A stretch of 64,000 nucleotides of DNA from Haplodiscus bocki (taxonomy: Eukaryota), in NCBI GenBank assembly GCA_965655095.1, contig OZ296651.1:110732001-110796000 (forward strand), written 5' to 3'. Positions 3,501-26,400 of this stretch are shown piece after piece (within the stretch, counting starts at the first letter, position 1; each line of letters opens with the position of its first letter). The notes below the pieces were generated by a model that ran no database searches, had not been told where the DNA came from, and was given only the letters and a program-made list of their open reading frames with translations. The translations under genes and the position numbers were made by a program.

Positions 3501-4132
3501 AATTTTTTGGGGGGCAAACCGGTCATTTTCGGCACTGTGAGACTACCCCGGGGGCACATTATGAGGTAAGAGGGGGTGTTTTTGGAGTCATCTGGAGCTA
3601 ATGGTTGAAATTGTACTTATGGTCTGAATCCGTAGGAGCCGTCCTTCAGGTCGAAAATGGGCGATTTGTAACGGTGATGCGTATCACCAACTCAAAATAT
3701 CACTTTCGGCACTGTGAGACTTCCCCGATGGGTGCCAAACCTGTATCAACGAACTTCACTCAATGAGTACTTACTACAAGTATAGGGGCTTGGAAGGCAG
3801 AATACCAATTCCTGAGAAGATATTAGAGATTTTTTTTAAAGTGACTAAGTCAGTGACTAAGTCAAAAATTTTGAGTCTCACAGCGCCGAAAATCTCAACA
3901 CAGATGTTCGATAGAAAAAAATTTCAGCAGAAAAAAGTTCTTAACTTCCGCATGCAAAAAATCAGGCAAATCGTATGGTTCAGTTTCGAGATCGTAATTG
4001 GGAGCCCCTAATTTTATAACTCCGTCCAGAAAGCCTGACTGATAGAGGCGGGAATGGGAACCCTACCGTTCCCGCCGAAAATGACGGGCCACCACTACCC
4101 CGCGCACCTAGCGGTCGAAGCTATTTCGAATG
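580..4132. mobile_element. Type A unit 1 (~3.55 kb), non-coding tandem unit, putative non-autonomous partner of the Helitron-like element
   Basis: Repeats head-to-tail, shares the common region with B units, has no conserved long ORF, and contains internal ~0.21 kb and ~0.88 kb duplications. Confidence 0.75.
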
Positions 4133-7100
4133 GCGAGAGTGGCGGGTTGTTTTTGATCACGCATGGAAGCAAAGGTTTCCTCACTGAAGCGTCTTTTCAT
4201 TGTGTCAATAACAGTTTTTTTGTGACTAAAAAGAAAAATCAGGCATTACACTTGTTTCGATTCAATGGAAAGTCAGCTGAAAGTTTTGGAAACTGGGAAA
4301 GGAATTTATCACGGGCAGCGCTTGCAAAGTGGGAAATCTGCCACTGTTTACGCGCAAGAGTTACTTAGGGAGTTACTGGAAACTTCCAACTGCAGCACAT
4401 TTTCTTTGTGTCAGCAAGAGCACCTCTATTCTGGAAGAGGATAAAAATGAGCATCTGGAGATATTTTGGTTCAATGGAACGCAAGCTGAAGCTTGTGGAA
4501 ACGCGGAAAAGAATTTGTCAACGCCTTAGTTGGCAAAACGGCAAATCGGGCACCGTGTAGTCACTGGAGGGTTTCTTTGATTTAGTCGAAACCTTCAGTA
4601 GGCTTGGAAATTGAAACGGACGTAGAGTACCCAGTACCAGTGGCCTGGCAAATCCAAAAAAGATGGCACTTCCACTGCAACATTTCTCTCAAATTAGATG
4701 TACAGAAAACACCTTCTTTATTCGACTAATGGCTGTCGCACTAACTGAAGTGCATGAGAACCCTACCAAAAATTCATTTTCATCACTTGCAGTCGCAAGT
4801 GATGAAAATGAAAACCACTCTACCTACTTGATTTCAGTATAATCAAAAAGGGGTAGTCACCATTTGGTCCTGTTCGTAGAGGACTTGTTGCTTGTTGTCA
4901 CGTGTAAAAAAAGGTAACGTAAAAAGTCTCCGTTGCACCTACCTTCCCTTGAACGTTGCCAAAAAGAGTAGTTTGAAATTTGAAAAGTGTTGGAATGAAG
5001 TAACTGTGCTTTTTTGGAACAAATCAAAGTTAATCAATGAGAACATTTTGAACAAAAATTGGAACCGGAAAATTGAAAATACAGGCAGTGTCTTTAGAGG
5101 GCAAACCAGGTTAAATCCGTCCTCCATGATGAAACGATACGAATTCATGAAATTGAAGTTTCAAGAAAAACATAGGAATGTATACATGCATCAATTAAAG
5201 CATGGAAAAAAATATCTGTCATTTAATAGTGCCATCGGCCAGGCTGTCGTGATTTTGAAAGCGGTTTATGGTATTAAAGAACTGGCGTAGTTCAAGAAGT
5301 TATCTTTACAGAAGAAAGAACGTGACAGAAATTTGACGCTCTGCTCGATTGGTTTTTAGTAGCAGGCTCACATGAAACGTTGAGACGTCAACTTTTGTTT
5401 TCAAATGCTTGGGAAACAAAGTATGGAAGCGCACTCTCGGCATCTTCGACACGGTTCATACAGGAAAAAATGCCTCTCCACGATTGAGACTAGTCAGTCT
5501 CCCAAAAAAAAGAACATTTAGTCGTCAGGAAACCAACAAATCAATTTAAAGCTTCATTGATTATCCTAATATCGGTAAATAACTGCAAGACGACTGGCAC
5601 TAGGGCGTGTTGCCTATTTTTGACCTTGAAACAAGGCTATGCTTCTCTCAGCAACAGTACTTTTCGAATACTTTATGACAGAATACTTTATGACGAATAC
5701 TTTTTCGAAAGAGAAAAAAATCTTTTTTTTTTGAAAATTTTTCTTTCTTCCATGTAACAATGAAATTTGAAGGAATCTACCTACGTCAACAGGAAAATGG
5801 GTTGCTGGAGAAGGATATGTGCCCTCGAATCTTCAAATGGCATACTTTTTCAAGATCTTCGAGACCTTTTGTCGAAAAAAACGTAGCACAGAAGCTCCAA
5901 GTTGAAAAAATCGGCATATGGGCGGAAAATTCAGAAGAATATGTCAAATCCAGAGTCACTTCTGATTATATGTTATCATGGAAGTTTGATTGCACCGTTT
6001 TCATTTCGCCTCGAAACATTCTTGGCTTGCGAGCACTGAAAATTTTGTCAATTCAAGTGCGATTGGGAAAAACTAAATGAAAAAAATGAAAATTTATTTT
6101 TTTTTCGGCACAGTGAGAATTAAACTTTGGATGAAGCGTAGGGAAAAAATCGAAAAATCTTTTTCCAAGGAAGTTGCTTGAAAGCATGGTCATTGTTGTA
6201 CGAAATATCTCGAACAAAAACTTTTGGGCAAAACCGCTCTGTTTCGGCACTGTGAGACTACCCCGGTGGCACCATATGAAGCAATGGTGGTTTTCTTTGG
6301 AGTCATCTGGAGCTTTGAGATCAAGTTGTATTCATGGTCTGGACTTGTAGGAGCCTTCATTCAGGCTGAAAACGGGCGATTTGTAACGGTGATGCGTATC
6401 GGCAACACAAATTATCACTTTCGGCACTGTGACACTTCCCCGGGGGTTGGGAAACCTGTATCACCGAACCTCACTAAATTAGTACTTACTACAACAACAG
6501 GCACTAGGGCGTGTTTCCTATTCTTCAACTTCAAACAAGGCTTCGCTTTTCTCAGCAACAGTATTTGTCGTAAAGTTTTCGATGAATAAAAATCTCTTTT
6601 GAAATATTATCTTTGTTCTGTGTAATAATTAAATTTTTAGAGAACTTACTTACGTCAACAGGTAAATGAGGTGATGGAGAAGGCAATGTTCCCCTGAGTG
6701 TTTAGAGAGCTTGGTGTGCTTTTCTACAGGTCTGCGAGCCCTTTTGTCGGAAAAAAAGTAGCACAGAAACTCTAAAACTCTAAGTTGAAAAAATCGGCAA
6801 GCAGATTAAAAATTCAGAGGACTATCTCAAATCGACCGTCACTTGTGCTTTGTACTACCCTTAAAATGTAAGCTGCAACGTTTAGATTTAGCCTTGAAAC
6901 TATGTTGGTTCACGATCCCTGAAGAAAAATACTTTTTCAGTAGGATTGGGAAGAAAACTAATTGAAAAAACTCAAAAAAAACAAATTTTCGGCACTGTGA
7001 GACATGAATGTCTGCTGAAAGCTATTGAGAACGTCGAAAAACTAATACCCAATGACATTGCTTGAAACTACGGCCCTCGATGTATGAATTGACTCGAACA

Positions 7101-7743
7101 CACTTTTTGAACCACATCCAATTTTTTTCGGCACTGTGAGACTACCCCGGGGCCAACTTATGAGGTAATAGGGGGTGTTTTTGGAGTCAACAGGAGCTAG
7201 TGAACAAAATTGTACTCATGGTCTGAATCCGTAGGAGCCTTTCTTCAGGCTGAAAATGGGCGATTTGTAACGGTGATGCGTATCACCAACACAAAATATC
7301 ACTTTCGGCCCTGTGAGACTGCCCCGCGGGGTGCGAAACCTGCATCATCGAACTTCACTCAGTGAGTACTTACTACAAGTATATGGGCTTGGAAGCCGTA
7401 ATACCAATCCCTGAGCAGATATTAGAGATTTTGTTGCAAGTGACTAAGTCAGTGACTAAGTCATTAATATTGGGTCTCACAGTGCCGAAAATCTCAACAC
7501 AGAGGTCCGATAGAAAAAAATTTCAGCAGAAAAAAGTTCCTAACTTCCAAAAATATGGCCGCATGCAAAAAATCAGGCAAATCGTATTGTTCAGTTCCGA
7601 GTTCGTAATTGGGAGCTCCTAAATTGATAACTACGTCCCAGAAAGCTTTACTGATGAGGCGGGAATGGGAACCCTACCCTTCCCACCGAAAAAGACGGGC
7701 TACAATCACCCCGCGCACCTAGCGGTCGAAGCTACTACGAATG
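4133..7743. mobile_element. Type A unit 2 (~3.61 kb)
   Basis: Colinear with A1; second sub-repeat is the variant carrying gagcttggtgtgctttt and aaactctaaaactcta. Confidence 0.75.
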
Positions 7744-8727
7744 ACAAGGCCTGCATTTTTTCTAACTTTTAGTGTATGTCTGTTGTTCCCCGCTTCGTTT
7801 TATTTCCCTACCGATAATATTTTCTTTCACGACTATCATGAAAAACGCTCAACTCTTGTCTCTTAGAAGTGTATATTTGTTCCTTGACACTTAATTCAAA
7901 ATTCAGGAGCCTCCGAGCACAACTTTGGCTACTTATGGTTTTTCGAATGCTTAGATGTTTTTTCGAAGAAAAGCATTTTCATGGATCACTTTCTGGTTTT
8001 TTTTTGTACTTCCATACACGATTCATTTAAAATGAAGACTGCTTAAAATAGCTTAAGTTTAAGTGCACTATATCAAACATTGATTGATTGCCTATTATGA
8101 TTTTTGCAATACCTTTCGCTAAATGTATCCTAAAAAACTTTCAGCTTTCTTGGTATTTCAATATGTGAAACTGACTTTCAGGTTCAAAGTTTTGGTTGTA
8201 GATAGAATAAAATGTTTTAACTCAAAGAATTTAATTTACTTCAGAGAGCTCAGGAAAAATGCCAATCAAAACACAGCATTAATTCATGAGCAACAAGACA
8301 ACAACAACACAGTTAGCTGTACTTAGCTCAGAGAAGTTTTTAATACAAACATGGTTCTAAAACAAAAAGAACACTGTTGCAAGTATGTAAAACTCATTTC
8401 AAATGTATATAAGAAGCGAAAACTTTGTGGCTCATGTTTTTTGCATCTTTCAAGTTAACATTTTTCTGAAAATTTTTGGATTGAAACTTTTCACTAGCGT
8501 AGGTTTTTGTATTTCTGAATAACATTCCAGGGATATCAGTACATGTCTTCTAATAATAGTAAAAATAGGCAGGAGGACTAAGATACAAAAATTTGTCTTC
8601 TTGGGTCGAGCACGTTGCACTCACCTCAGACGTTTCATAAGACTAAACATGATAAACTAATAGGTTTCATTTATACGATGCTGTGTCATTCTGGCCCCGG
8701 CCCCTCTTCATATATTCCCAACCTGCT

Positions 8728-9711
8728 TCAAACATTGCCATCATGGCCATACATTAAAACATTTTGAGCAGCAGAAAACAGTGTGACGGGCTCTATTGAG
8801 GAAATGTGGTATGCAAACGTCCCACTCGCTACACCTTCCTCATCCATTGCCGGTTTGAACCAGCCCGTTATACGAAACCCCTGATTAGCCGCAACATTAT
8901 TGGCCAATTCTATCACTTCATCCTCCATGTCGAATGTATCCAAATTATCCGAAGACAACTGTTCGGTTCTTTTATTGGCATGAACCAAATTCTTTGTGAG
9001 GGCCATGGATGTAAACTCCACCGCCTTTTCACCAGTTACACGCTCACCCAATTCGTTGCAAACAATCTTGAAAGTCAGTGCCCAATGCTTTTTACTCTCC
9101 GCTAAAATGCAAGGACAGGGGTTATTTCCCTGGGCGTCGCATAATTTTCCATTGCACACATTGTCTTTAGGCATAGCTTGAAGTATGCGGAAATTTGATG
9201 GAATGAAATCAAAGAACACGTAATTAGGGATATTGATATCAGTGGGGGGAGGTTTGTGTACATTTCCCCTTCCAGTAGGAACAACAGGGTCACCAAACTG
9301 AATCAAAGGATTTTGTGTTGTTTTCAGATACCCAATTACTTTAGGGCTTAGTACCCAAACGGGGCAACCTGGCGCAAGATGTTGACTATAGCACAGTATT
9401 CTTCTTGACTCCATTGATGTTTGCGTGAAAGTTAGCAGGACATGATTTGTCCCTTCCACACCTAGTACGATAAACCTATCATTGTTAACTTCCTGGTATC
9501 TCGATTTGAAAGTGTTTTTTGCAGGTTTATAGTAATTGATTTTTTTCAAACCTGGTGTTGCATAAAGAAAAACACACTTCAGCTTATAACGTGAAGGTAA
9601 TTCATATTCATCACTTATGATTTGATTATACTGTTTTGTTTCGAATTTTTCGTTGACACTCATTTGAACCTCATTCAGGGGCTTTTCGAACTTGATGTAA
9701 CCTACAGGCAT
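8728..9711 (-). CDS. 327-aa element-encoded protein of unknown function with C-x4-C-x7-C-x-C motif (possible Zn-containing OB-fold/RPA-like)
   Basis: ORF is open in all four B copies; motif CNGKLCDAQGNNPCPC; many differences between copies are at third codon positions. The function is inferred only. Confidence 0.85.
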   Translation of the reverse strand: MPVGYIKFEKPLNEVQMSVNEKFETKQYNQIISDEYELPSRYKLKCVFLYATPGLKKINYYKPAKNTFKSRYQEVNNDRFIVLGVEGTNHVLLTFTQTSMESRRILCYSQHLAPGCPVWVLSPKVIGYLKTTQNPLIQFGDPVVPTGRGNVHKPPPTDINIPNYVFFDFIPSNFRILQAMPKDNVCNGKLCDAQGNNPCPCILAESKKHWALTFKIVCNELGERVTGEKAVEFTSMALTKNLVHANKRTEQLSSDNLDTFDMEDEVIELANNVAANQGFRITGWFKPAMDEEGVASGTFAYHISSIEPVTLFSAAQNVLMYGHDGNV

Positions 9712-10013
9712 TTTGCACTGAAAAAAAAACGGAGTTTTTGTTTAAAACTGGTAATGCTACCAAAATTGATAGCTGGATGCATTTTTAAAAGGCATAGCCA
9801 AAACAATTCTCATCAATACTTATTGCGATTTTGAAATTGCAGCTGCGAGAAAGAAAACAGTAGACCCTGTAGAAAAATACTCGACCCGTTCGAAAATACT
9901 GAGACCTAATACGCAAAATGGTTACTTTTCAGGTGTAGACAAAACTTTTGAAGATAAAACGAAAAATGACGTATCCATTGTAAGATAAATGCAGGTAAGG
10001 GAAAAATTCAGGA

Positions 10014-10058
10014 GAACGCTCGCATCGGGCACGTAAAACGTCCCCGCTGACTCGCTAG
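10014..10058. terminator. Conserved GC hairpin + CTAG between the GIY-YIG stop and the orphan ORF (Helitron-end-like signal)
   Basis: CGGGCACGT-AAA-ACGTCCCCG-ctgactcg-CTAG is nearly invariant at 10014, 32875, 45210 and 57562, while its flanks drift. Confidence 0.55.
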
Positions 10059-10096
10059 AAAAAATAACAAAGTAAAATTTAATTGTATAGCAAGGA

Positions 10097-10604
10097 TCAT
10101 GAAATAACAGTTCCGCAACAACAAAAGACTAAGTTACCAAATTGATTGGAATTGCATAAAGTTCGAAATTCATCAACAAGTGCGTCAATTCTTAAATCAA
10201 AAAACAACAGTTGGTGCAAAGAGGTCTCCATAAGCAACCTGTCACTGTCATTTTGAAAATTATAACAGAATGCGGCCAATGACCATGGTCTGCGATGAAG
10301 TGGTAATGTAAAATTGCCTCCGTAACCACTGTTATGTTCAAGGAGACGTGTGAGAACACTTCTTTTCGTTTGACCAACATAGGTAGTTTTCAAAGTTTTG
10401 TCTTTCAAGCTCACAAGAACATATACGAAACCAAGAATAACGTCTGGAATTTCAACCCGAATTGGACGGAATTGAAATTCTGGTAAATTCAGCACTGTAG
10501 GAGCTCTGCTCATTGTTTGAAGATTCATCAATCTTTTAGTTACTTCAATTTCATGAGGGGTTGTTTTCGACAAAATAGCTCTGATCGCCCGACAAGTGTC
10601 ATCA
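10097..10604 (-). CDS. GIY-YIG endonuclease exon (last exon of the RepHel gene)
   Basis: GFVYVLVSLKDKTLKTTYVGQTKRSVLTRLLEHNSGYGGNFT..RPW..E resembles the SLX1/UvrC-type GIY-YIG pattern; the exon is open in all four copies. Confidence 0.85.
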
Positions 10605-10729
10605 CTGCAATTAGAAAAAGGCTTTTCCTTAGTTCCTCAATTGGTGCAAGAATTAAAATCTGGATGAAGAAATGAATTTGACCTATTTATGTCTCATCTA
10701 AAATTGGAGCCCCTAAGGAAAAGCCTTAC
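10605..10729 (-). other. Predicted 125-nt phase-2 spliceosomal intron joining the helicase to GIY-YIG
   Basis: AT|GTAAGG donor and TTTTTCTAATTGCAG| acceptor. Splicing gives FVGDI-DDTCRAIRAILSKTTPH in frame. Same length and sites at 33466-33590, 45801-45925 and 58153-58277. Confidence 0.8.
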
Positions 10730-13700
10730 ATATCGCCAACAAAGATAATATTTTTCAATTCTCTGACACGACTGACAATAACATAAAGCTGGGAAGCCAT
10801 CCAAAGTGCATATTTCCGTTCCTGAATGGAAACTTGAGTTGCTAACTTTGGAAAGGTATCTCCCATTAACTTATGACATGTGAGAGCTACGTAATTTGTT
10901 AGAGGAAACTGGATTCTCCGAACAGATGATGCTTTCATTTTGTAAATAAAACCATTACTTTTGTATACTCTTGTTGTCGGCCAATTCAAAAACAACTGTT
11001 GGCTAAACAAATTTGGGGTAGCTATGGAATCAATTTCAGGTGACACGTAAACCAGTATAGATGTGTCACTGGGCGACGGTAATTCTGCCACAATACATAT
11101 TTGTCCCTGTGTCAGAGGTCCAGTGTTTATTGTCAACCTGACAACAGAATGCTTTTTCAAAACTAATTTCGCAGGTTCCCTACATTCACGGTCTAAATAA
11201 TTGACTGCCTGATGCGTTGCCGGAACCCAGTAGTTGCTTCTATTTGTGCACATTTCATCTTGAGATAAAAACTCAACAAAAGGTTCGTTGGAGGCTGTCA
11301 CCGAATTTTGATAGGCTGCGATGGCTTCTCTTTCTGCTTCTTTTTTACCGAAAACTTTCATCACTGATGTATCGGACAATGAATCCCACGATGGGATGAA
11401 GGAACAGTTTGAACGTATTATTTCGCTGATGGTATCTATATCCCGCGTGGGTATTGGCTTCTGCGACATTAAATCCAGAAGCTGCTGCCCCACTGGGTCT
11501 AACATTCTAACTAAACTGGTCAAAAAATGAGTTTGGAAGCAAAATAAAATCGTGGGTGACAGAAAAACATCTGAACCGTCAATAGCTGGTAGTTGATTGG
11601 TGTCTCCGTTACCTACGACCATTACACCGCCGAACATGCACGTATTTTCTCGAACATTCTGCAGAATCAGGTTAATTGTGGATAACAGTTCACCATTGAG
11701 AAGTCCAATTTCTTCAATTACCAGAATGTCCAAAGATAGGAGTAAAGCTTTCTGCTCCGGATGGTTATGTAACTTCGTCATTGCTCTTTCCATTGCTGTG
11801 TTGGGATCTAATTTTTTGTTGACCCCGATGCAGAACAGGCGGTGTATATGTAAACAATTGAAATGAGACGCTCGACGAGCGGCTAAACTGGTAACATAAC
11901 ATTGAAGTCCATTCATCATGGCATAGAGCAAACAGATGCTTGTTAGGTGACTTTTTCCAGATACTGGTCTACCAAGGACAAGTTGGTTCCTAATTGACTC
12001 ATGTGATTGCAGAACTTGATCAACAGCTGCAAAAAGTCTTGTTAGAACAACCTGCTGTTGACGGTGTGATGCTACTGATTGATGACTTGGTTTAATAACT
12101 GCTGGGACCCAATGTGCTGTTGGGTTTTGAGTTATTGTATTCGGAACGTTGGTGACATTTTGTGGTCGTAAACGTTGAAAAAGACGTTCTTGCGTTTCCT
12201 GCAGAAAAACCATTAAAGTTCTTTCTGTCTGCTCTGTCAAGTGACTCATTAGAACTGGCGGAAAGCAGTTGCTAGCAACGCTGTCGTTCAAAATTAGATC
12301 TTGAATTGCTTCGGCTGCAAAAACCAAACGCGAAGAGAAGGAAACGTTGCCTCCTGGAATGTAAATTAACTGTTCTAAAATGTAACGTTTAAGGAGATGA
12401 TGGCTATCAGTTATATCATATTGTGCTTTTCGTGGAATAATTCCAGCAGTCACGAAACAATTCCTCAGGCTACTAGAAGAAAACAAATCGAGTTCCGTCT
12501 CGAAAGAACCCATTGTGTATAGCAGATGGAGTAGGAACTTGAAATGGTTTTTCGGATAAACTTTAGAAAAGACGATTTCTGCTGGACCCGCTGACAGCAT
12601 CGTACTCTCTGCCACGTATATTTCTCGGAAATTTGTTGTGTTCAAATTTCTCAACACGTTTTCAAACTCAGCGACACGTGGGTCATTAAAACCTGTGAAC
12701 TGCGTGAACCATATTTGTAATTCACGCAAGGCTGAAGATCTCAATTTAATTTTCGAATTAGTTCCATCTAACCATGGTCTTGGAACGAGTGATAAAGTTG
12801 GAATGACTTTGTTGGAGTGAATGCGTGTCTTGTCTCTCACGAAAAAAGCGAAGTAATCTTTCAACTTACGAACAAATAGTAATTCGGGTGGACGGATTGA
12901 GAAAAGAGTGACTTTATCGATTGAGAAATTGGAGTGGGAAGCGTCTTCTATCTGCGTTTTTTGACGATTTGTGAAACAATTATGCTGCGGGAACAACAAA
13001 AATTCACGTTCACTCAGGGAATTACCGTCACTGCCACTGGGTAGAACATACGAACGAGGTTTCCTGTAGAATTTTCCTCCACGGTTTTCCAAAGATATTG
13101 AAGGAACATGAACGAATTCAAAGTTTGTAATAACCACTGGCAGCTTCAGTAACCACCACAGGTATTCAGTTTGAGATACATTTAAAGCTGAGATTGCTGG
13201 CGTCTGTCTTTCCTGTTGTAGAGACTTATTGTTCTGGATTTGAGCTCCCGTGACTTTCAAGTTTTGCAGCTCCATTTGCTGTATCCGAAAAGAATTGTCT
13301 GCTGTTCCTGCTTTCATTTGAACACTACCATGTTCTTCTTTTCCGGCAGCATACTTGTTTAAATATTGGAAGCAAAATTTCTGGTGATAATTTGAACATT
13401 GCTGCTGGATTTGGTCAGAGCAAATAACTTGGGAGAAGTAGGCATAATTTGAGAACCTTTGTCAGCAGCATATGAGACTTTTTCGCACTTCAATTGTTCT
13501 CCTACTTCGTAATTCCAGTCGTCAATAAAACGAATTAGGTTCAGCTGTGCCAAAATTTGGGCGGCCTCAGCTGAATAGGTTTGCGGTATTTCTTTCAGCC
13601 ACAAAGAATGGGAAGGGGCATATGGTTGAAAGCGACAAATTTTTTTTCCAGTTGAATCTGTTTTCTTGAAACAGCGGCCCGACGTATTTTCGCAATTGTG

Positions 13701-16700
13701 ACATTGAATTTTAAAGCAAAGGTCGATGATGTCACTCAACTCCTCAACGGTGTCGATCAAGTGGATCTCGGAATGGAAAAGTTTTTCAAACGCGTCAATG
13801 AAATGTTTTCGTGTAGATTCCATTAGTGATTCAATTTCATGTCTTTCATTTTTCAACCAGAGTAAAAAGTGGTAATGAGGAAAATTAGCCGCCAACGACT
13901 GAAACTCGGCGCGTCCCCAAAGTTTTACAATATTACCCAAAAGATTCTCGTCTGAATTAAGCAGATAATCAACCAGCTCATTAACGGTATTGTTCCACAT
14001 TTGCAACAACATTGGCATGTACAACTGGAACGCAGCTTTGTAAAGTTCCGTTCTTTTGTCTGGGAACATTTCCTCGATGGCGTTGAACATCGGTGCAATT
14101 CCAAAATGTTTCTTTTGGTTGACCGTAATTGTGAGAAAAATCGCAGGTGTTTCGGTTTTGATTGCTTTAGCAAGTTCGACGACGTTTTTCTCAGAATCCA
14201 GCAAGGAGAAACTGACTGACTGAGGAACAGAGTGCAATTGTTTGCCTTTAATTTCAATGTTATGCACACCTCGCTTGAAAAACTCTGAAGTGAAACTACT
14301 TTGTAAACTAACATTGAGCAGCACGTCAGTGAGATAAAACAAATACTTGCTGTTACAAGAGACCGGTAGCTCAATATTATTCACACGGGCGAGAACGTGT
14401 TGGTGGAAGCTGGCGAATCCGTAATGATTATTACTCTGCTCGTCGTCTTACAAAAAGTACGGCAAAGCTCCAGTAAAAGCGCCGTCTGATTCCTGATTGA
14501 AAAACACACTGGGACAAAATAGCGATTCAGTTTGAATTAAAGAAAGAACGTCACCCGGATTGGCGGCCGCAAAGTTCTGAAAAAACCGTAAGTACTTTTT
14601 TGACATGACTATAGGGCTTTCGAATCGCCTACACACATTGAGAGCTCCATTAAGGAGCAGGTGAAATGGGGCCATATTGTTTTCAGTTTCGAGCTCTGGC
14701 AAAATGTTTGTGGCTTCCGTTTCCCCGCACTGAGTATTCACGGCACCTGTCTCTTCGATGCCGACAAAATTGACAAGAGACAGAGAATCATTCGAACCGC
14801 TTACATTTGAAGGCGAGAAAGCATTGTCTATCGATAAGGTCGGTAAATTATTTGATTCCATTTCTGAGTCAACCGAAATATTTGAAGGTGAGGGCGAACT
14901 GGCTGCGACAACAAAACAATCGAACCGTTCAGAATACTCTCGGAAATGATTAGAACAAATTGATACTCCACAAAATTCAACTGGACAACGCCATGCAGAT
15001 GTCCGTGAACAGTCAGCAACTGAACACCTGAAAACTGACGATTTTATGTCGACAGACAAATACATTTTGTGTGTGGAACAAGTGCAAACATCTTGACCTC
15101 CAAAAAAAACCAAACTTCCGGTACGAGTAACAGAATTATAATTGTTTGACACATATAACAGAATGTTCCATGATCTGTACAGACCTTCGAGCATTGTTGT
15201 TGAGTTGCATTTGGTAGAAGTAAAATCAGGCAAAGAAACTGACCACCAATCTGGTAAGTGAATACCGTAACGAAAAAAAAAAGAAATTTTCTCCCTCACT
15301 AAAAAGCGAAACTAAATGAAATGTGGTTGAATGCAGTGTGAGTGTAAAGGGAGGAGGATTCAACCTCGACGGGAGTTGGCTGCAAACGATTACAAAACAT
15401 TGAAAATCAAAATCTTCCGCTATATCAAACAAATCTATCATTTGGTGTCGAATAACTAACTGCCGAAAGGGAACGTAGAAAGAAGCACAAAGAGGCATTG
15501 TCTCAAAAGCTTGATGAATCGCAGAAGTGGCAGTTGACACGGAAAAATACAATTGGAAGTGTTGTTGCAACAAGGATATAGCTCTATTAACCGTTTCTCC
15601 TTTTTTCTTTTTGTTATTACCCAATTGATGTAATTTTAAAATGTATTGAGACCAGTTGCAAACATTTAGAAGGATGTGACCAAATAATTCCAGATTTTGG
15701 TGCCAAAAAACAAGCAGACTTGCACCTTGCGAAACAGTATACAGCAGTTTCGGACAGCCCTGGGGCTCAGCGCCATGTCTTCGGTCGTGATGAACGATGA
15801 GGAGAGAGGGTGGTACACAAACTTTGCCGCCAGTATGGCAATCCAAATAAAGCTTAACGCTACTCAACGAAAACATTGTCAGGTAAGTTCCTGAAGACAG
15901 ATGCTGCTCAAAAGCAACTTCGTCAACGAACAGCGGGAACTTTGCAATGAAAGATCGCATGTTCTCGTCTATTTCATTCTGATTCGTGAGACGAGTCAGG
16001 AAATTCCTTATGTCTCTGCGGTGGTCATAAACTAGCGATTCCGATTGAGGAAGCAGCTGATCACTTTTTACATTATAATTTCGCTGGTTAGTTACAATCA
16101 AGGTGCTGATTCCGTCATACCCGCCTTTACTCGTTGCCATAGAATACGTGTGCGAGAAACTTCCCAATTTGAAAGGTGTAGCATTTCGCACTTTTGTCGC
16201 CATTGGAGCAAAACGATCACTTTGCGGATGCAGTAGATTCCCGAGAGGAGAAGTAGGGACGTGAACGATTTTTTTGTGAGATTTTTGTGAGCTTGGCATG
16301 TTTTGAGAAAAAGCCCATGGTCGTTGACTTCTAAACAAGGCGAACAGACAAAGGTATCAAGGTGTTGGCAAGCTCGTAAAAAGTCTTTGCGCATTCCTCG
16401 TAAACAATGTGCGTCAGCTTGGAAGGATTTGAAAGAGGGAAAAAAGTAGTTTAACAAATGGACGAAGGAAATGTTATCGCAGGCAAAAAGTGGAACAGAG
16501 CACCCGGCAGGACACTTGACGAAAGGAAAACAGTGTTTATTGAACTCGTGTTTCAAATTAGCCGCTTTGAACTCCTTCTTGCTTTCCAAAAACTTTCGCT
16601 GTTTGACTGTATAGTCCTGGAAAAGACTGCTGCTGGTATCTTCCTCTAGTTGGTGGTATGCTTCGCTCCAGCATTTGTACCAGGACTGTCTCATTTCAAC

Positions 16701-18100
16701 GGGAAGTAACTTATAAAAGTAGTAACCATTGCAATTATTTTTAGAACTTAATATTAACGTGCAGAAAACCGCGGGCCACGCAAATTTCCACTCCAAGCTA
16801 TCACAAAACTTCTCACAAAGTTGACAAGTGCAGATGAGACTTCCCAATGGCGACTTCACTTTTGCCCCAAATTTTTTTTTCCTGTGTTTATTAGAGCATG
16901 AAATCGTTTCAAAATGTAGGTTATAAAACGATGTACTCTCTCGCAAACAAATTGCGCATGTCGTAGGACTAGGAGATGGGACAACACTGCAGGTTGTTGA
17001 AGCAAGAAGTTCCCGTAAATCCACTTCACAAATCACTTTAAAAGTAGCTGTGCTGGTCCTTGTAACCAGCGAGGCAAATGTATTACTCTCGATTGAGCTT
17101 TGCAAATCACTTGACCCCCGTGTGCATGAAGAAGCGTCAAAAGTGCCAACGTCTAATTCTTCAGAATGAGTACTTTCCAAAAACGAAACAGCTTCAGTTT
17201 CACCATTATCAACAACAAACACAGTTTGCTCTGCTTCATCGACAGCACTCGCAAAGCGGCCAGTTTTTGGGTCTCTTTCTCTAACAGACATGCCAGACAA
17301 GTATGTTAATTACATGGCCACAAAACTAGAACCACCTAAGCTGTGCTATAGTGGGTTGATTCTTCAAAAAAGACATGCTGACGTTCAAATCGATTAACGA
17401 AATACAATTCAGAAATTAAGAAGAAAAATCACCTAAGCGTAGCTATGATGGGTTGATTCTCTCTTTAGCAGTAACAATTTCAAATACTGTGACCGATATA
17501 ATGGTTTTCAGTTGAGCACCAAATTCACAGGGCTGTCAAAATTCCATTTATTGAACAACAGAATACTAGGAAAACTGCCACTCGAGACGCTGAAGCAACC
17601 ATCCATGAATCGTCATTACGTCAATAATATCAGCAACCCATAATTCAACTGAAAACATCATATTCGAGCAGGCGAAACCACAGTTTCCGTTTTACACGTA
17701 CCAGAAAAAAAACTCCCAGAAAGAATGATCAAGAAGGCACCTTTAAAAAAACCGCCTGATAAAAAAGATTCTTGAGTATAACGTTTATGCAAAACCTATG
17801 AAAGCAAAAAGTTCCAATTAAGAAAGGCAAGTTCCTTCAACACTTATGGAAGTTCAATAAATTCCAAGTACAATTTCAAAGTGACTAAAACAATCAACAA
17901 ACCTATACTGATCATTGAAAACAAATCAATGTTCAGTAAAAAAAATACTGCATCACTTAGGTTTCATTCGGAGATTAAAGAAAACCAGAAAAGTATTGGC
18001 AGCTAAAAACAAAGACAGATTGTAAAAACAAAATCAATGAATCAAAAATCAAGTGAAAAGCTTCATTGCACAGAGGAAATGAATTCCTAAACTGAAAACA

Positions 18101-18822
18101 CTAGAAGCGGTTGACAATTTTTCGTCTGATCAAACTTTGTAAATTGAAATTTCCACGTGTGTCTAGATGCACTTTATCAAATTTGAAGATGTTCTTATTC
18201 GCCAATTTTGACGCAACTCCATGGTATATGTATCCACCATTGGCAGCTCCTCGTTGAGAGAAGAGATTCAGTTCTTTTATCAAGTTGGACACCTCGTTGT
18301 CCAGCCTCAAACATACAGCCAGAACGTGAATCCTGTTAACTTTTGACTGCAGCATTACGACAAGTTCCATAATTTGTTGATGAACCTGAACAATCAAACG
18401 AGAAATTGTTGTATCTTTTCTGAATTTATCATGCCAAAACTCATTTACTGCATCTTTTCCGATACTACTGAAAACAAAGCCTACCTCTCATGGGTTGAGA
18501 CACGAGGTCCCACCTAAGGCAGCATGAAAAAAAATAAGTCCACGTTTCGACAAACTTTTGCTTGAAGTCAAGATTACACAATTTAAGTAAATATATTAAC
18601 CATAGCTGGTGGAACAGCTGGAGCTCCATTCCATTGTTTCAAACTGTTGCCGCCCAAGAACAGAATAATTTGCTCATATTCTCCATACCTCATACTATTA
18701 ATGCATCCAACAACTCGCCGATCATTCGGCCTGGCTCCGGAATACGCGAAGACTTTTGTATTAGGTAGAGTTAAGTTCAAACCCATGGAATCGCTGATCA
18801 AGGCAAACTTCGATATAGACAT
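18101..18822 (-). CDS. SGNH/GDSL-type hydrolase, ~168 aa, two exons (18822-18601, 18385-18101)
   Basis: Blocks ISDSMG (I), YSGA (II), LFLGGN (III) and FDKVHL (V). Phase-0 intron ATG|GTTAAT...TTGTTCAG|GTT gives PPAM-VHQQIMEL. Confidence 0.75.
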
Positions 18823-20079
18823 TTTCTGACTCTGGAAAAAGGTTTGTTGACCTTTTTGTAAAATGCAGTTAACCGAATTGTATGGTTAACAGTTCAAAAA
18901 TTTTACTAGGCAATAATGGACACTGTGAACCCTAAAACATCAACAACGAAATGTGTGTAACGTACAACTAAAAAAACGGAACAGGCTAAATTACTTATAT
19001 ATTACTTTTGAAAGTTCAGTTTTAGATAACTTGCCTGTTTGGAATTGTACGGAACCTAGAAGCAGATCACCACTTCATACAAAAGACGTGAACGTTGTAC
19101 TCCATATGAAACGAATAAACGACAACATATTAAACATGAACCATTGGTTTAAACCCATAAAATCTTCGGCAATTTCCCTGACATAAGAGCAAAAATGTGG
19201 TCGTTAGTCACCGGGGCATTGAAGCAGTTGGATTGCGAATGCTTAAATTGAAAGGATGTTACTTGATTTAACGTAAACATTATTTAGAAAGTTTTTCCAT
19301 AAAAAATATCACTTTTAAAATTTTCGGCATTGTGAGACACATACATTCAAAATGGGCTCAGGAAAACGTCGGAAGTTTCATTTTTCATCAAAATATTTGA
19401 AAACTGCACCCGTTCAGGTAACATTTGGAAAGAAAAAAATTATTGGATGACATTGGTCATTTTCGGCACTGTGAGACTACCCCGGGGGAATCTCATGGGG
19501 TATTAGGGGGTGTTTTTGGAGTCATCTGGAGCTACTGGATAAAGTTGTATTCATGGTCTGAATCCGTAGGAGCCTTCCTTCAGGCATAAAACGGGCGATT
19601 TGTACCGGTGATGCGTATCACCAACACAAAATATCACTTTCGGCACTGTGAGACTCCCCCGCGGGGTGCGAAACCTGTATCACCGAACTTCACTCAATGA
19701 GTACTTACTGCAAGTATATAGGCTTGGAAGGCGTAATACCAATCCGTGAGGAGATATTAGAGATTTTGTTCAAAGTGACTAAGTCAGTGACTAAGTCAAA
19801 AAAATTGAGTCTCACAGCGCCGAAAATCTCAAGACAGATGTCCGATAGAAAAAAATTTCAGCAGAAAAAAGTTCTTAGCTTCCGAAAATATGGCCGCATG
19901 CAAAAAATCAGGCGAAATCGTATGGTTCAGTTTCGAGATCGTTATTGGGAGCCCCTAAATTGATAACTACGTCCCAGAAAGCTTTACTGATGAGGCGGGA
20001 ATGGGAACCCTACCCTTCCCGCCGAAAAGGACGGGCCACAACTACCCCGCGCACCTAGCGGTCGAAGCTATTTCGAATG

Positions 20080-23000
20080 GCGAGAGTGGCATGTTGTTTT
20101 TGCTCACGCATGGAAGCAATGGTTTCTTCACTCAAGCGTCTTTTCCTTGTGTCAATAACAAATTTTTTTGTGGAAAAAAAATAGACAATACACATGTTTC
20201 GATTCAAGAGAACGTCAGCTGAAAGTTTTGGAAACTGGGAAAAGAATTTATCACCGGCAGTGTGTGCAAAATGGGAAATCTGACACTGTTTACGCGCACG
20301 AGTGCTTTAGGGAGTTACTGGAAAGTTTCAACTGCAGCACATTTTGTTTGTGTCAACAAGAGCACTTCTACTCTGAAAAGGGAAAGTGGAGCATCTAAAG
20401 ATATTTTGATTCAATGGAACGTAAGTTGAAGGTTGTGGAAACGATTAAAAGATAAAGTCACCGTCTTAGTTGGCAAAACGGGAAATCGGGCACGGTGTAC
20501 GCGCAGGAGGGTTCCAGTGAGTTTGTGGAAACTTTCAGCAGGCTTGGAACGTGAAACGGACGATGAGTACCCAGTAGCAGTGGTCTGGCGAATCCAAAAA
20601 ATATGACATTTCCAGTGCAACATTTCTCTCAAATTAGACGTCCAGAAAACGCCTTCTTTATTGGAACAACGGCTGTCGCACTAATTAAAGTGCATGTGAA
20701 TCCTACTAAAGTTTCATTTTCATCAATTGCAGTAGCAAGTGATGAAAATGAAAACCATTTTACCTACCCCGAGTCCAATAAAATCAAAAAGGGTAGTCAC
20801 CAATTGGTCCTGATCGTATAGGACTTGTTGCCTGTTGTCATGTGTACAAAGAGGTAACGAAAAAAGACTATGTTGCACCTACCATCCCTTGAACGTTGCC
20901 AAAAAGAGTAGTTTCAAAATCGAAATTTGTTGGAATGAAGTAACTGCGTTTTTTTGGAACAAATCACAGTAAATCAATGAAAACATTCAGAACAAAAGCT
21001 GGAACCGGAAAATTGAAAATGCAGGTAATGTCTTCAGAAGGCAATCAAGGTTATTTCCGTCCTCCATGATGAAACGATACGAATTCATGAAATTGAAATT
21101 TCAAGGAAAGCTCAACAATGTATACATGCATCAAATAGAGCATGGAGATTAATATCTGTCATTTGATAGTGCCATCAGCCAGGCTGTCCTGATTTTGGAA
21201 GCGGTATATGGTATCCAAGAAGTGGGGTAGTGCAAGAAGTTATCTTTACGGAAGAAAGAATTTGACAGTAATTTGGCGCTCCGCTCGATTGGCTTTTAGT
21301 TGCAGGCTCATATCAAACGATGAGACCTCTACTTTTGTTTTCGAATGCTTGGGAAGCAAATAATGGAAGCACACTCTTGGCATCTTCGACATGGTTCGTA
21401 TAGGAAAAAAATGCCTCTCCACGAGTGAGACTATTCAGTCCACCAGAAGGAAGAACAGTTAGAAGTCAGGAAACCAACGAATCAATTTGAAGCTTCACTG
21501 TTTATCCTAATATCGGTAAAAAACTGCAAGATGACAGGCACTACGGCGTCTTCCCTATTTTTTGGCCTCCAAACAAGGCTATGCTTTTCTCAGCAACAGT
21601 ACTTGTCATAAAGTTCTCGAAGAAAAAAAATCTCTTTTTTTTGAATTTTTCTCTTTTTTTCTGTGTAACAATGAAATTTGTAAGGAACTTAGTTGCATCA
21701 ACAGGTAAATGGGGTGATGGAGAAAGAGATGTGCCCTTGAAAGCTCAAATGGCATACTTTTTCGAGATCCGCGAGACTGTTTTGTCGATAAAACGTCGCA
21801 CAGAAACTCCAAGTTGAAAAGATCGGCAAAAAGCCGAAAAGTTCAGAAGACTATGTCAAATCCAGAGTCACTTCACTTCTGATTCTATGTTACCATGTAT
21901 TTTTGTGTTGCAACGTTTTCAACCCGCCTTGAAACATTCTTGGCTAGCGAGCACTGAAAATTTTGTCAATTCAATTGCGATTGGGAAAAAACTATTTGAA
22001 AACATCCAAAAATCATTTTTTCGGCACAGTGAGACATGAAATTCAGATGAAGGGTTTTAAAACTATGGAAAAATTTTTTTCCAGTGGAGCTGCTTGAAAC
22101 CATAGCCATTTTTGTACGAAATGACTGGAAAAGAAGTTTGGCCAAATTTGATCTTTTTCGGCACTGTGAGACTAGCCCGGGGGCATCACATGGAGCAAAA
22201 GTGGGTGTTTCTGGAGTCACCAGGAGCTTTGGGATAAAATTGTATCCTTGTTCCGGACTTGTATGAGCCTTCTTTCAGGCTGAAAACGGGCGATTTGTAA
22301 AGGTGATGCGTATCGCCTACACAAAATTTCACTTTCGGCACTGTGAGACTTCCCCGCGGGGTGGGAAACCTTCATCACCGAACTTCACTTAATGAGTAGT
22401 TACTACAACGACAGGCACTAGGGCGTCTTTCCTATTGTTCAACTTCAAACAAGGCTATGCTTTTCGCAGCAACAGTACTTGGCATACAGTTTTCGATGAA
22501 TGAAAATATCTTTTTTTGAAGTTTTCTTTTTTTCTATGTAACAAATGAAATTTCTAAGGAACTTACTCGCGTCAACAGGTAAATGAGGTGATAGAGAAGG
22601 AGATGTGCCCTTGAGAGTTAAAATTGCATGGTTTTTCAAAGATCTGCGAGACTTTATTGTCGAAAAAACGTAGCAAAGAAACTCCAAGTTGAAAAGATCG
22701 GCAAAAAGCCGAAAAGTTCAGAAGATTATGTCAAATCCAGAGTCACTTCTGATTCTATGTTACCATGTATATTTGTGTTGCATCGTTTTCAATCCGCCTT
22801 GAAACATTCTTGGCTAGCGAGCACTGAAATTATTGTCAACTCAAGTGCGAATGGGAAAAAAATTAATTGAAAAAAACTCAAAAATCATTTTTTTGGCACA
22901 GTGAGACATAAACTTTGGCTGAAGGGTAATAAAACTGTCAAAAAAATTTTTTTCCAATGAAGCTGAATAAAACCATAACCCTTGTTGCACGAAAAAACTC

Positions 23001-23468
23001 GAAAAAACTTTCGGCCAAACCGATCATTTTCGGCACTGTGAGACTACCCCGGGGGGTGCGAAACCTGCATCACCGAACTTCACTCAATGAGTACTTACTA
23101 CAAGTATATAGGCTTGGAAGCCGTAATACCAATCCCTGAGGAGATATTACAGATTTTGTTCAAAGTGACTAGGTCAGTGACTAAGTCAATAATATTGCGT
23201 CTCACAGTGCCGAAAATCTCAACACAAAGGCACGATAGAAAAAAAATTTAGCAGAAAAAAGTTCCTAACTTCTGAAAATATGGCCGCATGCAAAAAATCA
23301 GGCAAATCGTATGGTTCAGTTTCGAGATCGTAATTGGGAGCTAAAGATTTTATAATAAGTCCCAGAAAGCTATACTGATGGAGGCGGGAATGGGAACCCT
23401 ACCCTTCCCGCCGAAAAGGACGGGACACCAAAGCCCCGCGCACCTAGCGGTCGAAGCTATTTCGAACG
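20080..23468. mobile_element. Type A unit 3 (~3.39 kb; ~180-bp deletion in the common region)
   Basis: Colinear with A1; two adjacent 14-mer-led segments are fused at ~23030-23060. Confidence 0.75.
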
Positions 23469-26400
23469 GCGAGAACGGCGGGTTGATTTTGCTCTCGCAT
23501 GGAAGCAATCGTTGCTTCACCGAATATTCTTCTCATTGTGTCAATAAGTTTTTTGTGACGGAAAAGAAAAAAAGCCATTACACTTGTTTTGGTTCAATGG
23601 AACGTCAGCTGAATGCTTTGGAAACTGGGAAAGGAATTTAACAACGGCAGCGCTTGCATTATGGCAAATCTGACACTCTTTACGCGCACGAGTGACTAAG
23701 GGAGTTGCTGGAAACTTTCAACTACAACATATTTTCTTTGTGTCGACAAGAGCATTTCTATACTGAAAGAGGAGAACATAGAGAATCTAAAGATATTTTC
23801 ATTCAATGGAAATTAAGCTGAAGCTTGTGGAAACGCGGAAAAGAAAAGGTCACCGCCTTAGTTGGCAAAACGGCCAATCGGGCACCGTGTACGCGCAGGA
23901 GGGTTTCAGTGAGTTAGTGGAAACTTTCAGGAGGCTTGGAACGTGAAACGGACGTTGAGTACCCAGTACCACTGGTCTGGCGGATCCAAAAAAGATGGCA
24001 CTTCCAGTGCAACATTTCTCTCCAATTAGATGTCCTGAAAAGGCCTTCTTTTTTCGAAGAACGGCTGTCGAACTAACTAAAGTGCATGAGAACCCTACCA
24101 AAGATTCATTTTCATCACTTGCACTAGCAAGTGATGAAAATGAAAACCATTTTACCTACCTTGAGTCCAGTAAAAAGAAAAGGGGTAGGCACCAATTGGT
24201 CCTGTTCGTAGAAGAATTGTTGCTTGTTGTCGCGTGTAAAAAGAGGTAACGAAAAAGACTGCGTTGCACCTACCATCCCTTGAACGTTGCCAAACAGAGA
24301 AGTTTGAAATTTGAAATTTTTTGGAAAGAAGTACCTGTGCTTTTGGCAACAAATCAAAGTAAATCAATGATAACATTCCGAACAAAAATTGGAACCGGAA
24401 ATAGGAATAGTGCAGGCAGTGTTTTTAGAAAGCAAATAAGGTTTTTTCCGTTCTCCATGATGAAACGATACGAATTCATGGAATTGAAGTTTCAGGGAAA
24501 GCATAAGAATGTATATATGCATCAAGTAGAGCATGGAAAAAATTATCTGTCAGTTTATAGTGCCATCAATCAGGCTGTCGTAATTCTGAAAGCGGTTTTT
24601 GGTATCAAACAAATGAGCTAGTGGAAGAAGTTATCTTTACGGAAGAAAGAAATTGACAGAAATCTGGCTTTCCGCTCGATTGGCTTTTAGTTGCAGCCTC
24701 ACATGAAACGATGAGACGTCTACTTTTGTTTTCAAATGCTTGGGAAGCAAATTATGGAAGCGCACTCTCGGCATCTTCGACACGGTTCATATATGAAAAA
24801 ATGCCCCTCCACGATTGAGACTATTCCGTCTACCAATAGGAAGAACAATTAGAGGTCAGGAAACCAACAAATCAATTTATAGCTTCAATGTTTATCCTAA
24901 TATTGGTAGATAACTGCAAATTGACAGGCACTAGGTCGTCTTTCCTATTTTCGGCCTTCAAACAAGGCTATGCTTCTCACAGCAACAGTACATGTCATAA
25001 AGTTTTCGAAGAAAAAAAATCTTTTTTTTGAATTCTTATCTTTTTTCTGTGTAACAATGAAATTTGTAAAGAACTTACCTACGTCAACAGGTAAGTGAGG
25101 GGATGGAGAAGGTGATGTGCTCTCGAAATTTTAAATGGCATACTTTTTCAAGATCTTCGAGACCTTTTGTAGAAAAAAACGTAGCACAGAAACTCCAAGT
25201 TGAAAAATCGGCAATTGGGCGAAAAATTCAGAAGACTATGTCAAATCCAGAGTCACTTCTGATTGTATGTTACCATGGAAAATTGATTGCAACGTTTTCA
25301 TTTCGCCTCGAAATATTCTTGGCTCGCGAGCACTGAAAATTTTGTCAACTCAAGTGCGATTGGAAAAAAACTAATTGAAAAAAATCATTATTTTTTTTCG
25401 GCACAGTGAGATATACAACTTTGAATGAAGGGTAAGGAAACTACCGAAAAACCTTTTTCCAATGAAGCTGCTTGAAACGATAGCCATTGTTGTACGAATT
25501 ACCGCGAAAAAAAAATTTTTGGGCAAAACCGATCCTTTTCGCCACTTTGAGACTACCCCGGTGGCATCATATGGAGCAAGGGTGGGTTTTCTTGGAGTCA
25601 CCGGGAGCTTTGAGATAAAGTTGTTTTCATGGTCTGGACTTGTAGGAGCCTTCCTTCAGGCTGAAAACGGGCGATTTGTAACGGTCATGCGTATCGCCAA
25701 CACAAAATATGACTTTCGGCACTGTGAGTCTTCCCGGGGGTTGAGAAACCTGTATCACCGAACTTCAGTAAATGAGTACTAACTACAACGACAGGCACTA
25801 GGGCGTCTTTCCTATTGTTCAACTTCAAACAAGACTACGCTTTCCTCAGCAACAGTATTTGTCATAAAGTTTTCGATGAATGAAAATCTCATTTTTTATT
25901 GTGTTTTTTTTCTATGTAGCAATGAAATTTGTAAAGAACTTACTTACGTCAACAGGTAAATGAGGTCATGGAGAAAGCAATGTTCCCTTGAGTGTATAAA
26001 GAGCTTGGTGTGCTTTTCTACAGATCTGCGAGCCCTTTTGTCGAAAAAAAATTCGCACAGAAACTCTAAAACTCTAAGTTGAAAAAATCGGCATGCAGAT
26101 TAAAAATTCGGAAGACTATCTCAAATCCACTGTCACTTGTGCTTTGTACTACCCTTGAAAAGTACGCTGCAACGTTTAGATTTTGCCTTGAAACTATGTT
26201 GGTTCCCGATCCCTGAAAAAAAATACTTTTTCAGTAGAATTGGGAAGAAAACTAATTGAAAAAACTCAAAAAACAAATTTTCGGCACTGTGAGACATAAA
26301 TGTTTGCTGAAAGCTATCGAAAACGTCGAAAAACTATTTCCCAATGACATTGCTTGAAACTACAGCCCTCGATGTTTGAATTGACTCGAACTCATTTTTT

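Follow-up and report, generated by a model that had tools for sequence, protein, structure and literature searches.

Helitron-like rolling-circle transposons are currently sorted into Helitrons, which carry no nuclease, and Helentrons or Helitron2 elements, which carry an apurinic/apyrimidinic (AP) endonuclease or none. RPA-like genes are established accessories of Helitrons and Helentrons (PMC11417382, PMC6431247). GIY-YIG nucleases are not among the 20 recurrent accessory domains listed by HELIANO, where the HLE2 family HelenSM92 of Sphagnum magellanicum, with short terminal inverted repeats and TT targets, is reported as a single case of GIY-YIG capture (PMC11417382). Here, a stretch of 64,000 nt from Haplodiscus bocki (assembly GCA_965655095.1, contig OZ296651.1, positions 110,732,001 to 110,796,000), referred to as the window and numbered from its first letter, was analysed. 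It contains repeat units of 12.33 kb, whose largest gene (RepHel) encodes an HUH Rep domain, a Pif1-like helicase and a GIY-YIG nuclease. With a probability of about 0.85, these units represent a decayed autonomous Helitron-like rolling-circle transposon belonging to a large GIY-YIG clade. The newness lies in the clade and not in the locus: it combines a Rep-Pif1 transposase ending in an SLX1-type GIY-YIG domain, usually a partner gene for a predicted zinc-ribbon OB-fold protein, characteristic junction signals and mixed arrays. An earlier note on the window, made from its letters alone, had called the lineage poorly described, and the full-text literature agrees, as the one link found there between Helitron-like elements and GIY-YIG is the Sphagnum family of HELIANO (PMC11417382).

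Members of the clade resemble Helentrons (HLE2) in the long polypeptide with a nuclease fused behind Pif1, the OTU domain of some members and the predicted RPA-like accessory. The 5' hairpin, the non-autonomous partners and the association with tandem repeats are further common traits (PMC4067079, PMC3627910). They differ from Helentrons in the nuclease itself, which is an SLX1-type GIY-YIG of unrelated fold and never Exo_endo_phos among the best 150 representatives described below. The RGSPHxH motif is missing, a Pfam search gave no match to DUF6570, and the 3' end is CTAG. On reading the junction alignment, an asymmetric terminal inverted repeat was not apparent and no complement of the 5' terminal bases was seen in the 3' subterminal region; no formal inverted-repeat search was made. 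Canonical Helitrons (HLE1, represented by Helraiser, PDB entry 7LCC) share with the clade the HUH motif, two tyrosines, a Pif1 helicase of superfamily 1B and a short palindrome about 11 nt before the CTAG (CTRR-like) 3' end. What sets the clade apart from them is an N-terminal extension of some 930 residues, the GIY-YIG domain, a 5' hairpin, a 5' end other than TC, EE in Walker B and HK.MG in motif V. The 5' hairpin recalls Helitron2, and CTAG recalls the CTRR of canonical Helitrons and proto-Helentrons. The proto-Helentron of Phytophthora likewise combines Helentron-like protein features with a CTAG 3' end and several accessory open reading frames (ORFs), whereas it lacks a nuclease domain and its target is A^T (PMC4067079).

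HelenSM92, the only published GIY-YIG Helitron-like family found, was compared by its description only. The same applies to texim, an SGNH hydrolase gene that in several fishes lies directly upstream of a Helitron coding region and shares its orientation (PMC4021074). The putative esterase gene of the window shares this position and orientation; the type of Helitron differs, and the clade may have acquired its esterase independently. GIY-YIG nucleases are also found in other eukaryotic mobile elements, namely Penelope-like elements and the bdelloid Terminons, retroelements with GDSL esterases, Rep ORFs, GIY-YIG and head-to-tail arrays (PMC6431247). Those elements carry a reverse transcriptase, whereas the window elements have none and their GIY-YIG domain is closest to SLX1.

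The RepHel gene and its GIY-YIG exon

Long unit 1 has the following gene content:

7719..20054, minus strand: long unit 1, of the autonomous type, 12,336 bp, with its 5' end at the high coordinate; the ends are placed to +/- ~3 nt, with the boundary inside CTAG/GT(G) (slash, boundary)
18101..18822, minus strand: putative SGNH/GDSL-like gene with two exons; exon 1 from the ATG at 18822 to ~18601, exon 2 from ~18470 to the stop at 18103-18101; splice sites approximate
10730..17291, minus strand: RepHel exon 1, comprising an N-terminal region of ~930 residues without recognised domain, the HUH Rep and the Pif1-like helicase
about 14700-13300, minus strand: HUH Rep, within RepHel exon 1
about 12700-10730, minus strand: Pif1-like helicase, within RepHel exon 1
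10605..10729, minus strand: spliceosomal intron, 125 nt, GTAAGG...TTGCAG
10097..10604, minus strand: RepHel exon 2, SLX1/UPF0213-type GIY-YIG domain; open in all four copies
8728..9711, minus strand: 'Cys4 orphan', predicted tandem OB-fold, RPA70-like single-stranded DNA (ssDNA)-binding protein; open in all four copies

The three genes are co-oriented on the minus strand in each complete unit, as had been proposed. They account for the only three protein-conserved regions per unit in tblastx comparisons with four related loci, which gave no capsid-like or other conserved ORF.

RepHel spans positions 17291 to 10097 (about 2,340 codons), with the N-terminal region, HUH Rep, Pif1 helicase and GIY-YIG domain in this order. 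The Pfam matches of the window copies to Helitron_like_N (E 2e-6 to 3e-6) and PIF1 (PF05970, E 1e-5) both lie just under the cut-offs, in keeping with the divergent lineage suspected earlier. Using a family profile of 33 sequences, the best match in the PDB is the Helraiser transposase (7LCC, E 1.5e-30), followed by Pif1 helicases (E 1e-28); the alignment with Helraiser spans motif I, HUH, the Y..KY tyrosine pair and the helicase motifs. A single-sequence search of the PDB returned Pif1 helicases only and did not reach Helraiser at E<1e-3. EFQ....PHYH in the window is aligned to EFQKRGLPHAH of Helraiser, with H162 and H164 invariant in 33 relatives. The tyrosine pair is aligned to KYLFKY, Y334 being invariant and Y338 present in at least 90% of the clade; in unit 1 a frameshift lies in this region. 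Intact relatives encode Rep and Pif1 in the same ORF, with a length of 2,178 aa in the related locus L004 and 2,100-2,800 residues overall. The Helraiser match and the aligned HUH and Y..KY residues uphold the assignment of the element as Helitron-like.

The core motifs quoted in the earlier note, namely EFQSLAANFPHYH, Walker B ...IEEIG... and ...HKLMG..., are present in the window and typical of the whole clade. Clade-wide, motif 2 reads GN(L/F)PHxH and is one residue longer (AANFPHYH in the window), Walker B contains EE and motif V reads HK.MG. The published signatures of motif 2 are RGLPHxH for Helitrons and RGSPHxH, together with an (F/Y)(W/L/Y/K)R triplet, for Helentrons (PMC4067079). The W.R preceding EFQ in the clade (consensus W.R.EFQ) may correspond to this triplet. 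A cluster H-x-C...C...C following HUH is conserved clade-wide (L004 core 221-243; window about 13700-13630, minus strand) and may form a zinc-binding insert. An N-terminal OTU protease domain is found in several lineages (L005, L006/P0025, P0028, L002, P0107 and P0045); in the window family it was looked for and not found. In L005, the N-terminal part of RepHel including the OTU domain is tandemly duplicated (L005:6916-10050 versus L005:10001-12200).

The GIY-YIG domain is an exon of the transposase gene, as had been assumed, because removal of the intron restores the frame and because intronless relatives read straight through. The helicase ORF ends with ...FVGD and is followed by GTAAGG; behind TTGCAG the frame resumes with ...DDTCRAIRAIL. 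This intron is present in the four window copies as well as in L003, L004 and L001, whereas L005 and more distant relatives contain the uninterrupted ...FVGD-KTETLDAIRSIL... sequence. The window domain matches PF01541 with an E-value of 5.9e-5, above the cut-off, and the nuclease-domain profile finds catalytic subunits of SLX1 (E 7e-13) as well as UPF0213 proteins of bacteria. Aligned motifs are VY..YVG, R, HNSG and RPW. Pfam, the SLX1 profile match and the alignments thus agree with the earlier call of a GIY-YIG nuclease in place of an AP endonuclease. The protein of L008 (L008:9968-17965) contains, besides its C-terminal domain, an extra partial GIY-YIG-like segment located N-terminally (residues 920-988).

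The extent of the clade was assessed by a HMMER scan of 1.84 billion cluster representatives (50% identity) with an intact relative as query. It yielded 2,429 matches, the best 150 of which were analysed as the closest ones. The helicase C-terminus is kept in 120 of these 150, and 111 of the 120 run on into a GIY-YIG domain homologous to the window exon; the other nine stop 3-47 residues past the helicase. Among the latter, those inspected as DNA (the window family, L004, L001 and L005) have the GIY-YIG sequence just downstream, separated from the helicase by the intron or, in the case of L005, by a frameshift. Neither an AP endonuclease nor any other C-terminal domain was found among the best 150 of the 2,429 representatives; these 150 all belong to the GIY-YIG clade itself. 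The architecture is therefore not peculiar to the locus, as it had seemed, and marks a clade that comprises 111 or more protein clusters (50% identity). Midpoint rooting of a tree built from 107 cores places the intron-split subclade, to which L004 belongs as the intact relative nearest to the window family, among fused lineages. Clusters of 18-36 near-identical proteins give an indication of copy number, and naturally intact relatives include L004, P0026 and P0066. At L003:19473, an intact RepHel of 2,170 residues from a second family begins.

The sources of the clade are almost wholly metagenome assemblies, with contigs of up to hundreds of kb. L008 is a distant member in a gene-dense eukaryotic contig with long intron-free ORFs (L008:1-9000 and 25549-26382), including genes for a Nipped-B-like cohesin loader and a member of the FtsZ/tubulin family; given this context, the clade spans very different hosts. 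Pattern scans of IMG/VR and of bacterial and archaeal genomes, whose sensitivity is limited, yielded no relatives.

The Cys4 orphan and the esterase gene

The second conserved gene encodes the Cys4 orphan, named after four cysteines (C186, C191, C199 and C201; C-x4-C-x7-15-C-x-C) that are invariant in 11-14 homologues at identities down to 16-20%. Using distant homologues from related loci, AlphaFold2 predicted its structure with a mean confidence (pLDDT) of 74.8, compared to 43 with 10 close homologues. The model consists of two halves rich in beta strands, both of which follow an OB-like order of strands, and the cysteines come after the first strands of the second half. In RPA70 DNA-binding domain (DBD) C, a zinc ribbon lies between beta1 and beta2 of the OB fold. 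Foldseek searches against the PDB returned Teb1/CST, RADX, RPA70 DBD-A/B, RPA trimers, POT1, HIN domains, bacterial single-stranded DNA-binding proteins (SSBs) and LEF-3, and those against a viral library returned baculovirus LEF-3, the closest viral fold match, and phage SSBs. The matches are essentially only OB-fold ssDNA binders at E 1e-3 to 1e-2 and template-modelling (TM) scores of 0.2-0.3, modest values that are expected because the two domains are oriented differently. With the orphan as query, sequence searches of Pfam and the PDB gave nothing. On the structural model, the orphan would be an RPA70-like ssDNA binder with tandem OB folds and a zinc ribbon.

Hidden Markov model (HMM) searches located an orphan homologue near RepHel in 8 of 11 families, with varying position and orientation; L002, L011 (with little flanking sequence) and L012/13 yielded none. 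The linkage extends down to RepHel identities of ~25-32%. A search of Joint Genome Institute (JGI) metagenomes with the orphan alignment returned one locus, L010, from a Cyphastrea coral metagenome.

The product of the third gene is a probable SGNH hydrolase, judged by motifs. Four SGNH blocks occur in the expected order (L-I-S-D-S, S-G-A-R, L-G-G-N and D-x-V-H-L) and are kept in four families that are 25-50% identical. Pfam and PDB searches with the esterase pieces of the window gave no match. The homologues in L005 and L007 produced three sub-threshold matches to PF13472 (Lipase_GDSL_2; E 1e-3 to 5e-3), and two pieces from L007 match consecutive stretches of this profile. The best PDB match of the esterase family profile is not significant (E 0.73); it is 6VJP ('Acetyltransferase'), which we take to be the SGNH domain of OatA, with an alignment over blocks I, III and V. 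Searching for homologues of esterase exon 2 turned up nothing beyond copies in the same genome, and with HMMs a homologue was detected in only 4 of 11 families. The putative esterase is probably a facultative passenger.

The earlier note had regarded the gene set as unusual and had expected homologous elements to carry both accessory genes. The set is in fact partly conventional, because the orphan models as a member of a known accessory class (RPA-like) and an SGNH gene has a precedent in fish. The expectation held in part: of the 11 families, 7 lack the esterase and 3 lack the orphan.

Array structure, junctions and divergence of the copies

The whole 64-kb window is an array of two kinds of unit, long and short, arranged head-to-tail on the minus strand. 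Besides unit 1, it contains the following units:

558..7718, minus strand: two short non-coding units, 3553 and 3611 bp (self-BLAST, junction alignment)
20055..30579, minus strand: three short units between long units 1 and 2, with lengths of 3389, 3566 and 3570 bp (self-BLAST, junction marker)
30580..42913, minus strand: long unit 2; orphan 31586-32572, GIY-YIG ORF 32958-33434
42914..55248, minus strand: long unit 3; orphan 43927-44982, in-frame stop near 53447 in esterase exon 2
55249..64000, minus strand: long unit 4, cut by the window end; orphan 56278-57264, GIY-YIG ORF 57645-58121

Unit junctions were placed using the motif CTAGGTGC as a marker and are located at 558, 4111, 7722, 20058, 23447, 27013, 30583, 42917 and 55252. 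The successive units have lengths of 3553, 3611, 12336, 3389, 3566, 3570, 12334 and 12335 bp; the last one exceeds 8.7 kb and is cut at 64000. Read in gene orientation, from high to low coordinates, the order is long unit 4 (cut), long unit 3, long unit 2, three short units, long unit 1 and two short units. The four colinear 12.33-kb units of the earlier note are real as repeats, but three are complete and one is truncated, and three short units separate long units 1 and 2. The interval 7744-20079 given for the element has the correct period but is out of register by ~25 bp relative to unit 1. Due to the window end, the esterase gene and roughly 280 codons at the start of RepHel are missing from long unit 4. 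The window contains no N runs and nothing that resembles human sequence, and scans of it for Rfam families, tRNAs and short-period tandem repeats were empty.

In a self-BLAST of the window, the long units are 90-94% identical to each other. Short and long units have ~35 bp at the 3' end and ~580 bp at the 5' end in common. Each of the five short units holds at least two adjacent subrepeats of ~880 bp that are 71-80% identical. The short units are interpreted as non-autonomous partners of the long element, and they look like such partners on the way to a higher-order satellite.

The organisation of the junctions is exemplified by the one at the 3' (low-coordinate) end of unit 1:

7650..7760, minus strand: unit junction; palindrome TCGAA..TTCGA (3'), CCGCTAGGTGC at 7722-7715, ~25 nt, 5' hairpin

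The hairpin has the sequence GGTGGGAAGGG-TAGGGTT-CCCATTCCCGCC, and its GGGTAGGG motif begins at 7679. The same pattern is repeated at the eight other window junctions, with GGGTAGGG mutated at the 4111 junction. A comparison of the window family with two further families in L003 and with L004, L001 and L005 revealed a common plan: a short palindrome, CTAGGTG, ~25 variable nt and a hairpin with the invariant loop region GGGTAGGG. The hairpin stems vary by family (GGCGGGAA with TTCCCGCC, GGGCCAAC with GTTGGCCC, GGATTC with GAATCC, GGGC with GCCC, AGGC with GCCT) and covary across at least five families. The 3' CTAG follows short palindromes, and the 5' end starts with GT(G/T) and not with TC, the boundary being placed to +/- ~3 nt. 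These shared junctions are hallmarks of cis-acting termini common to autonomous and non-autonomous partners. The loop GGGTAGGG, seen at 7679 and seven other window junctions as well as in L001, L003, L004 and L005, equals two telomere-type TTAGGG units minus one T.

Arrays of different families adjoin at the same signal. In L003, a window-type array ends exactly after ...CCGCTAGGTGC, where an element from another family starts. Switches between families fall within CTAGGT(G) at L003:15570, L003:18067 and L001:1033. Within 3 kb of L003, three families stand head-to-tail (L003:15570, L003:16818 and L003:18067), with every switch inside CTAGGT(G). An autonomous copy followed by a short-unit array is also found in L003, L004, L001 and L005; the short-unit period is 3.6 kb in the window family, 1.97 kb in both L004 and L001, and 1.22 kb in L005. 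The arrays L004:12549-21005 and L001:20111-23642 are made of a near-identical 1.97-kb short unit and stand behind autonomous families that are ~50% identical in protein. Both come from sample ERZ25074608, which suggests either cross-mobilisation or one shared array type.

Frameshifts and stops were called against the nearly intact copy in L003. Unit 1 RepHel has frameshifts near 16272, 15270 and 13375 and a stop at 14450. Unit 2 has frameshifts near 39580, 36490, 35961, 34899 and 33919 and a stop at 37557. In unit 3, frameshifts lie near 52060, 50730, 49100, 46670 and 46055 and stops at 51497, 49821 and 49081, and in unit 4, frameshifts lie near 62655 and 62125 and a stop at 60703.

Purifying selection has acted on RepHel, GIY-YIG and the orphan. 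In pairwise comparisons of the copies, the ratio of nonsynonymous to synonymous divergence (dN/dS) amounts to ~0.1 in the orphan, to 0.2-0.3 in Rep and helicase and to 0.06-0.29 in the GIY-YIG exon. Most of the divergence between copies therefore accrued while the genes were under selection. Non-coding parts differ by 7-16%. The divergence is uneven along the unit, as determined from the helicase (10732-13317), the orphan (8728-9711) and their counterparts in the other copies. Unit 4 has the most diverged orphan (dS 0.23-0.25 to the others; 0.25 between units 1 and 4), whereas its helicase differs by only ~0.09; the outlier for the helicase is unit 2. This mosaic suggests recombination or gene conversion between sublineages.

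Origin of the arrays and place of the clade

Several observations weigh against a mobile Helitron-like element with the gene functions given above. No solo insertion or empty site was seen, all copies being directly adjacent to another element, which leaves mobility, exact termini and target site unproven and places the nick only to +/- ~3 nt. RepHel is disrupted in all four copies, a point that the earlier note had not made, with 2-5 frameshifts and 1-3 in-frame stops each. Motif 2 matches neither the Helitron nor the Helentron signature, and the tree of 107 cores comprises clade members only, with no reference Helitrons or Helentrons. As for the accessory genes, the fold matches of the orphan are weak and no sequence method links it to RPA. 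The SGNH identity rests on motifs and sub-threshold matches, and the esterase, with few substitutions and a dN/dS of ~1 among the window copies, displays no purifying selection.

Part of this pattern would also arise if one or a few ancient insertions had been amplified by unequal crossing-over as a higher-order satellite, with no later transposition. The regular period, the long and short units with shared ends, the breakage of every RepHel copy and the extension of the array over the whole 64-kb window fit such a history, as does the region-dependent divergence (dS between units 1 and 4 of 0.25 in the orphan versus 0.09 in the helicase). A mainly recombinational array is nevertheless rather unlikely: the copies diverged under purifying selection (dN/dS 0.1-0.3), which is unexpected for silent satellite copies, different families abut exactly at CTAGGT(G), and the layout of an autonomous copy with a short-unit array recurs in unrelated families and samples. 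The accessory domains raise a separate issue, since gene capture is typical of Helitrons and the GIY-YIG domain, the OB-fold gene and the esterase could all be captured host genes without a role in transposition. HELIANO calls the only published GIY-YIG case a captured domain (PMC11417382), and fish texim has been interpreted as a captured gene (PMC4021074). The patchy esterase (4 of 11 families, dN/dS ~1) and the differing position and orientation of the orphan between families would agree with this. Against it stand the in-frame GIY-YIG fusion in 111 of the 120 proteins from the best 150 representatives, with no alternative C-terminal domain, the purifying selection on GIY-YIG and orphan, and the persistence of the linkage between orphan and RepHel at RepHel identities of ~25-32%, so that capture is an unlikely account.

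An HUH Rep and a helicase also form the core of many ssDNA replicons, and LEF-3 is the closest viral fold match of the orphan. An endogenous viral or episomal Rep-helicase replicon is nonetheless highly improbable, as the unit has no capsid-like or other conserved ORF, the Rep-Pif1 fusion with Y..KY is a Helitron signature, and the pattern scan found no IMG/VR relative. Moreover, the relatives lie on contigs of hundreds of kb, and L008 adjoins ordinary eukaryotic genes.

For the rolling-circle transposon, the following course can be proposed. Rep would nick the transposed strand at the CTAG/GT junction, with the 3' palindrome and the 5' GGGTAGGG hairpin as guides, and the Pif1 helicase would peel the strand off in 5' to 3' direction. 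The RPA-like OB-fold protein would coat the single-stranded intermediate. GIY-YIG may take over the job assumed for the AP endonuclease of Helentrons, either nicking of the target or trimming of branched or flap intermediates. Arrays could be formed by read-through of the termination signal or by integration at the junction of resident copies. It is a tentative proposal, possible though doubtful, that the clade constitutes a third major eukaryotic Helitron-like group next to Helitrons and Helentrons, characterised by an ancestral SLX1-type GIY-YIG fusion to Rep-Pif1 and a dedicated zinc-ribbon OB-fold partner. Its members would insert site-specifically at the CTAG/GT junctions of one another, and autonomous and non-autonomous elements of different families would in this way build head-to-tail arrays and directly seed satellite DNA.

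If the reading as a Helitron-like GIY-YIG clade is true, an unrelated, structure-specific nuclease occupies, in a species-rich clade, the same position as the AP endonuclease of Helentrons, and a second nuclease would be a recurrent need of the transposition pathway. The clade would then offer a natural comparison for working out the role of the nuclease, and it would explain why these elements mostly escape current tools, which are built on known Rep and helicase profiles. A concrete model for the origin of long-period satellites from rolling-circle elements would come from the conserved junction together with the mixed-family arrays.

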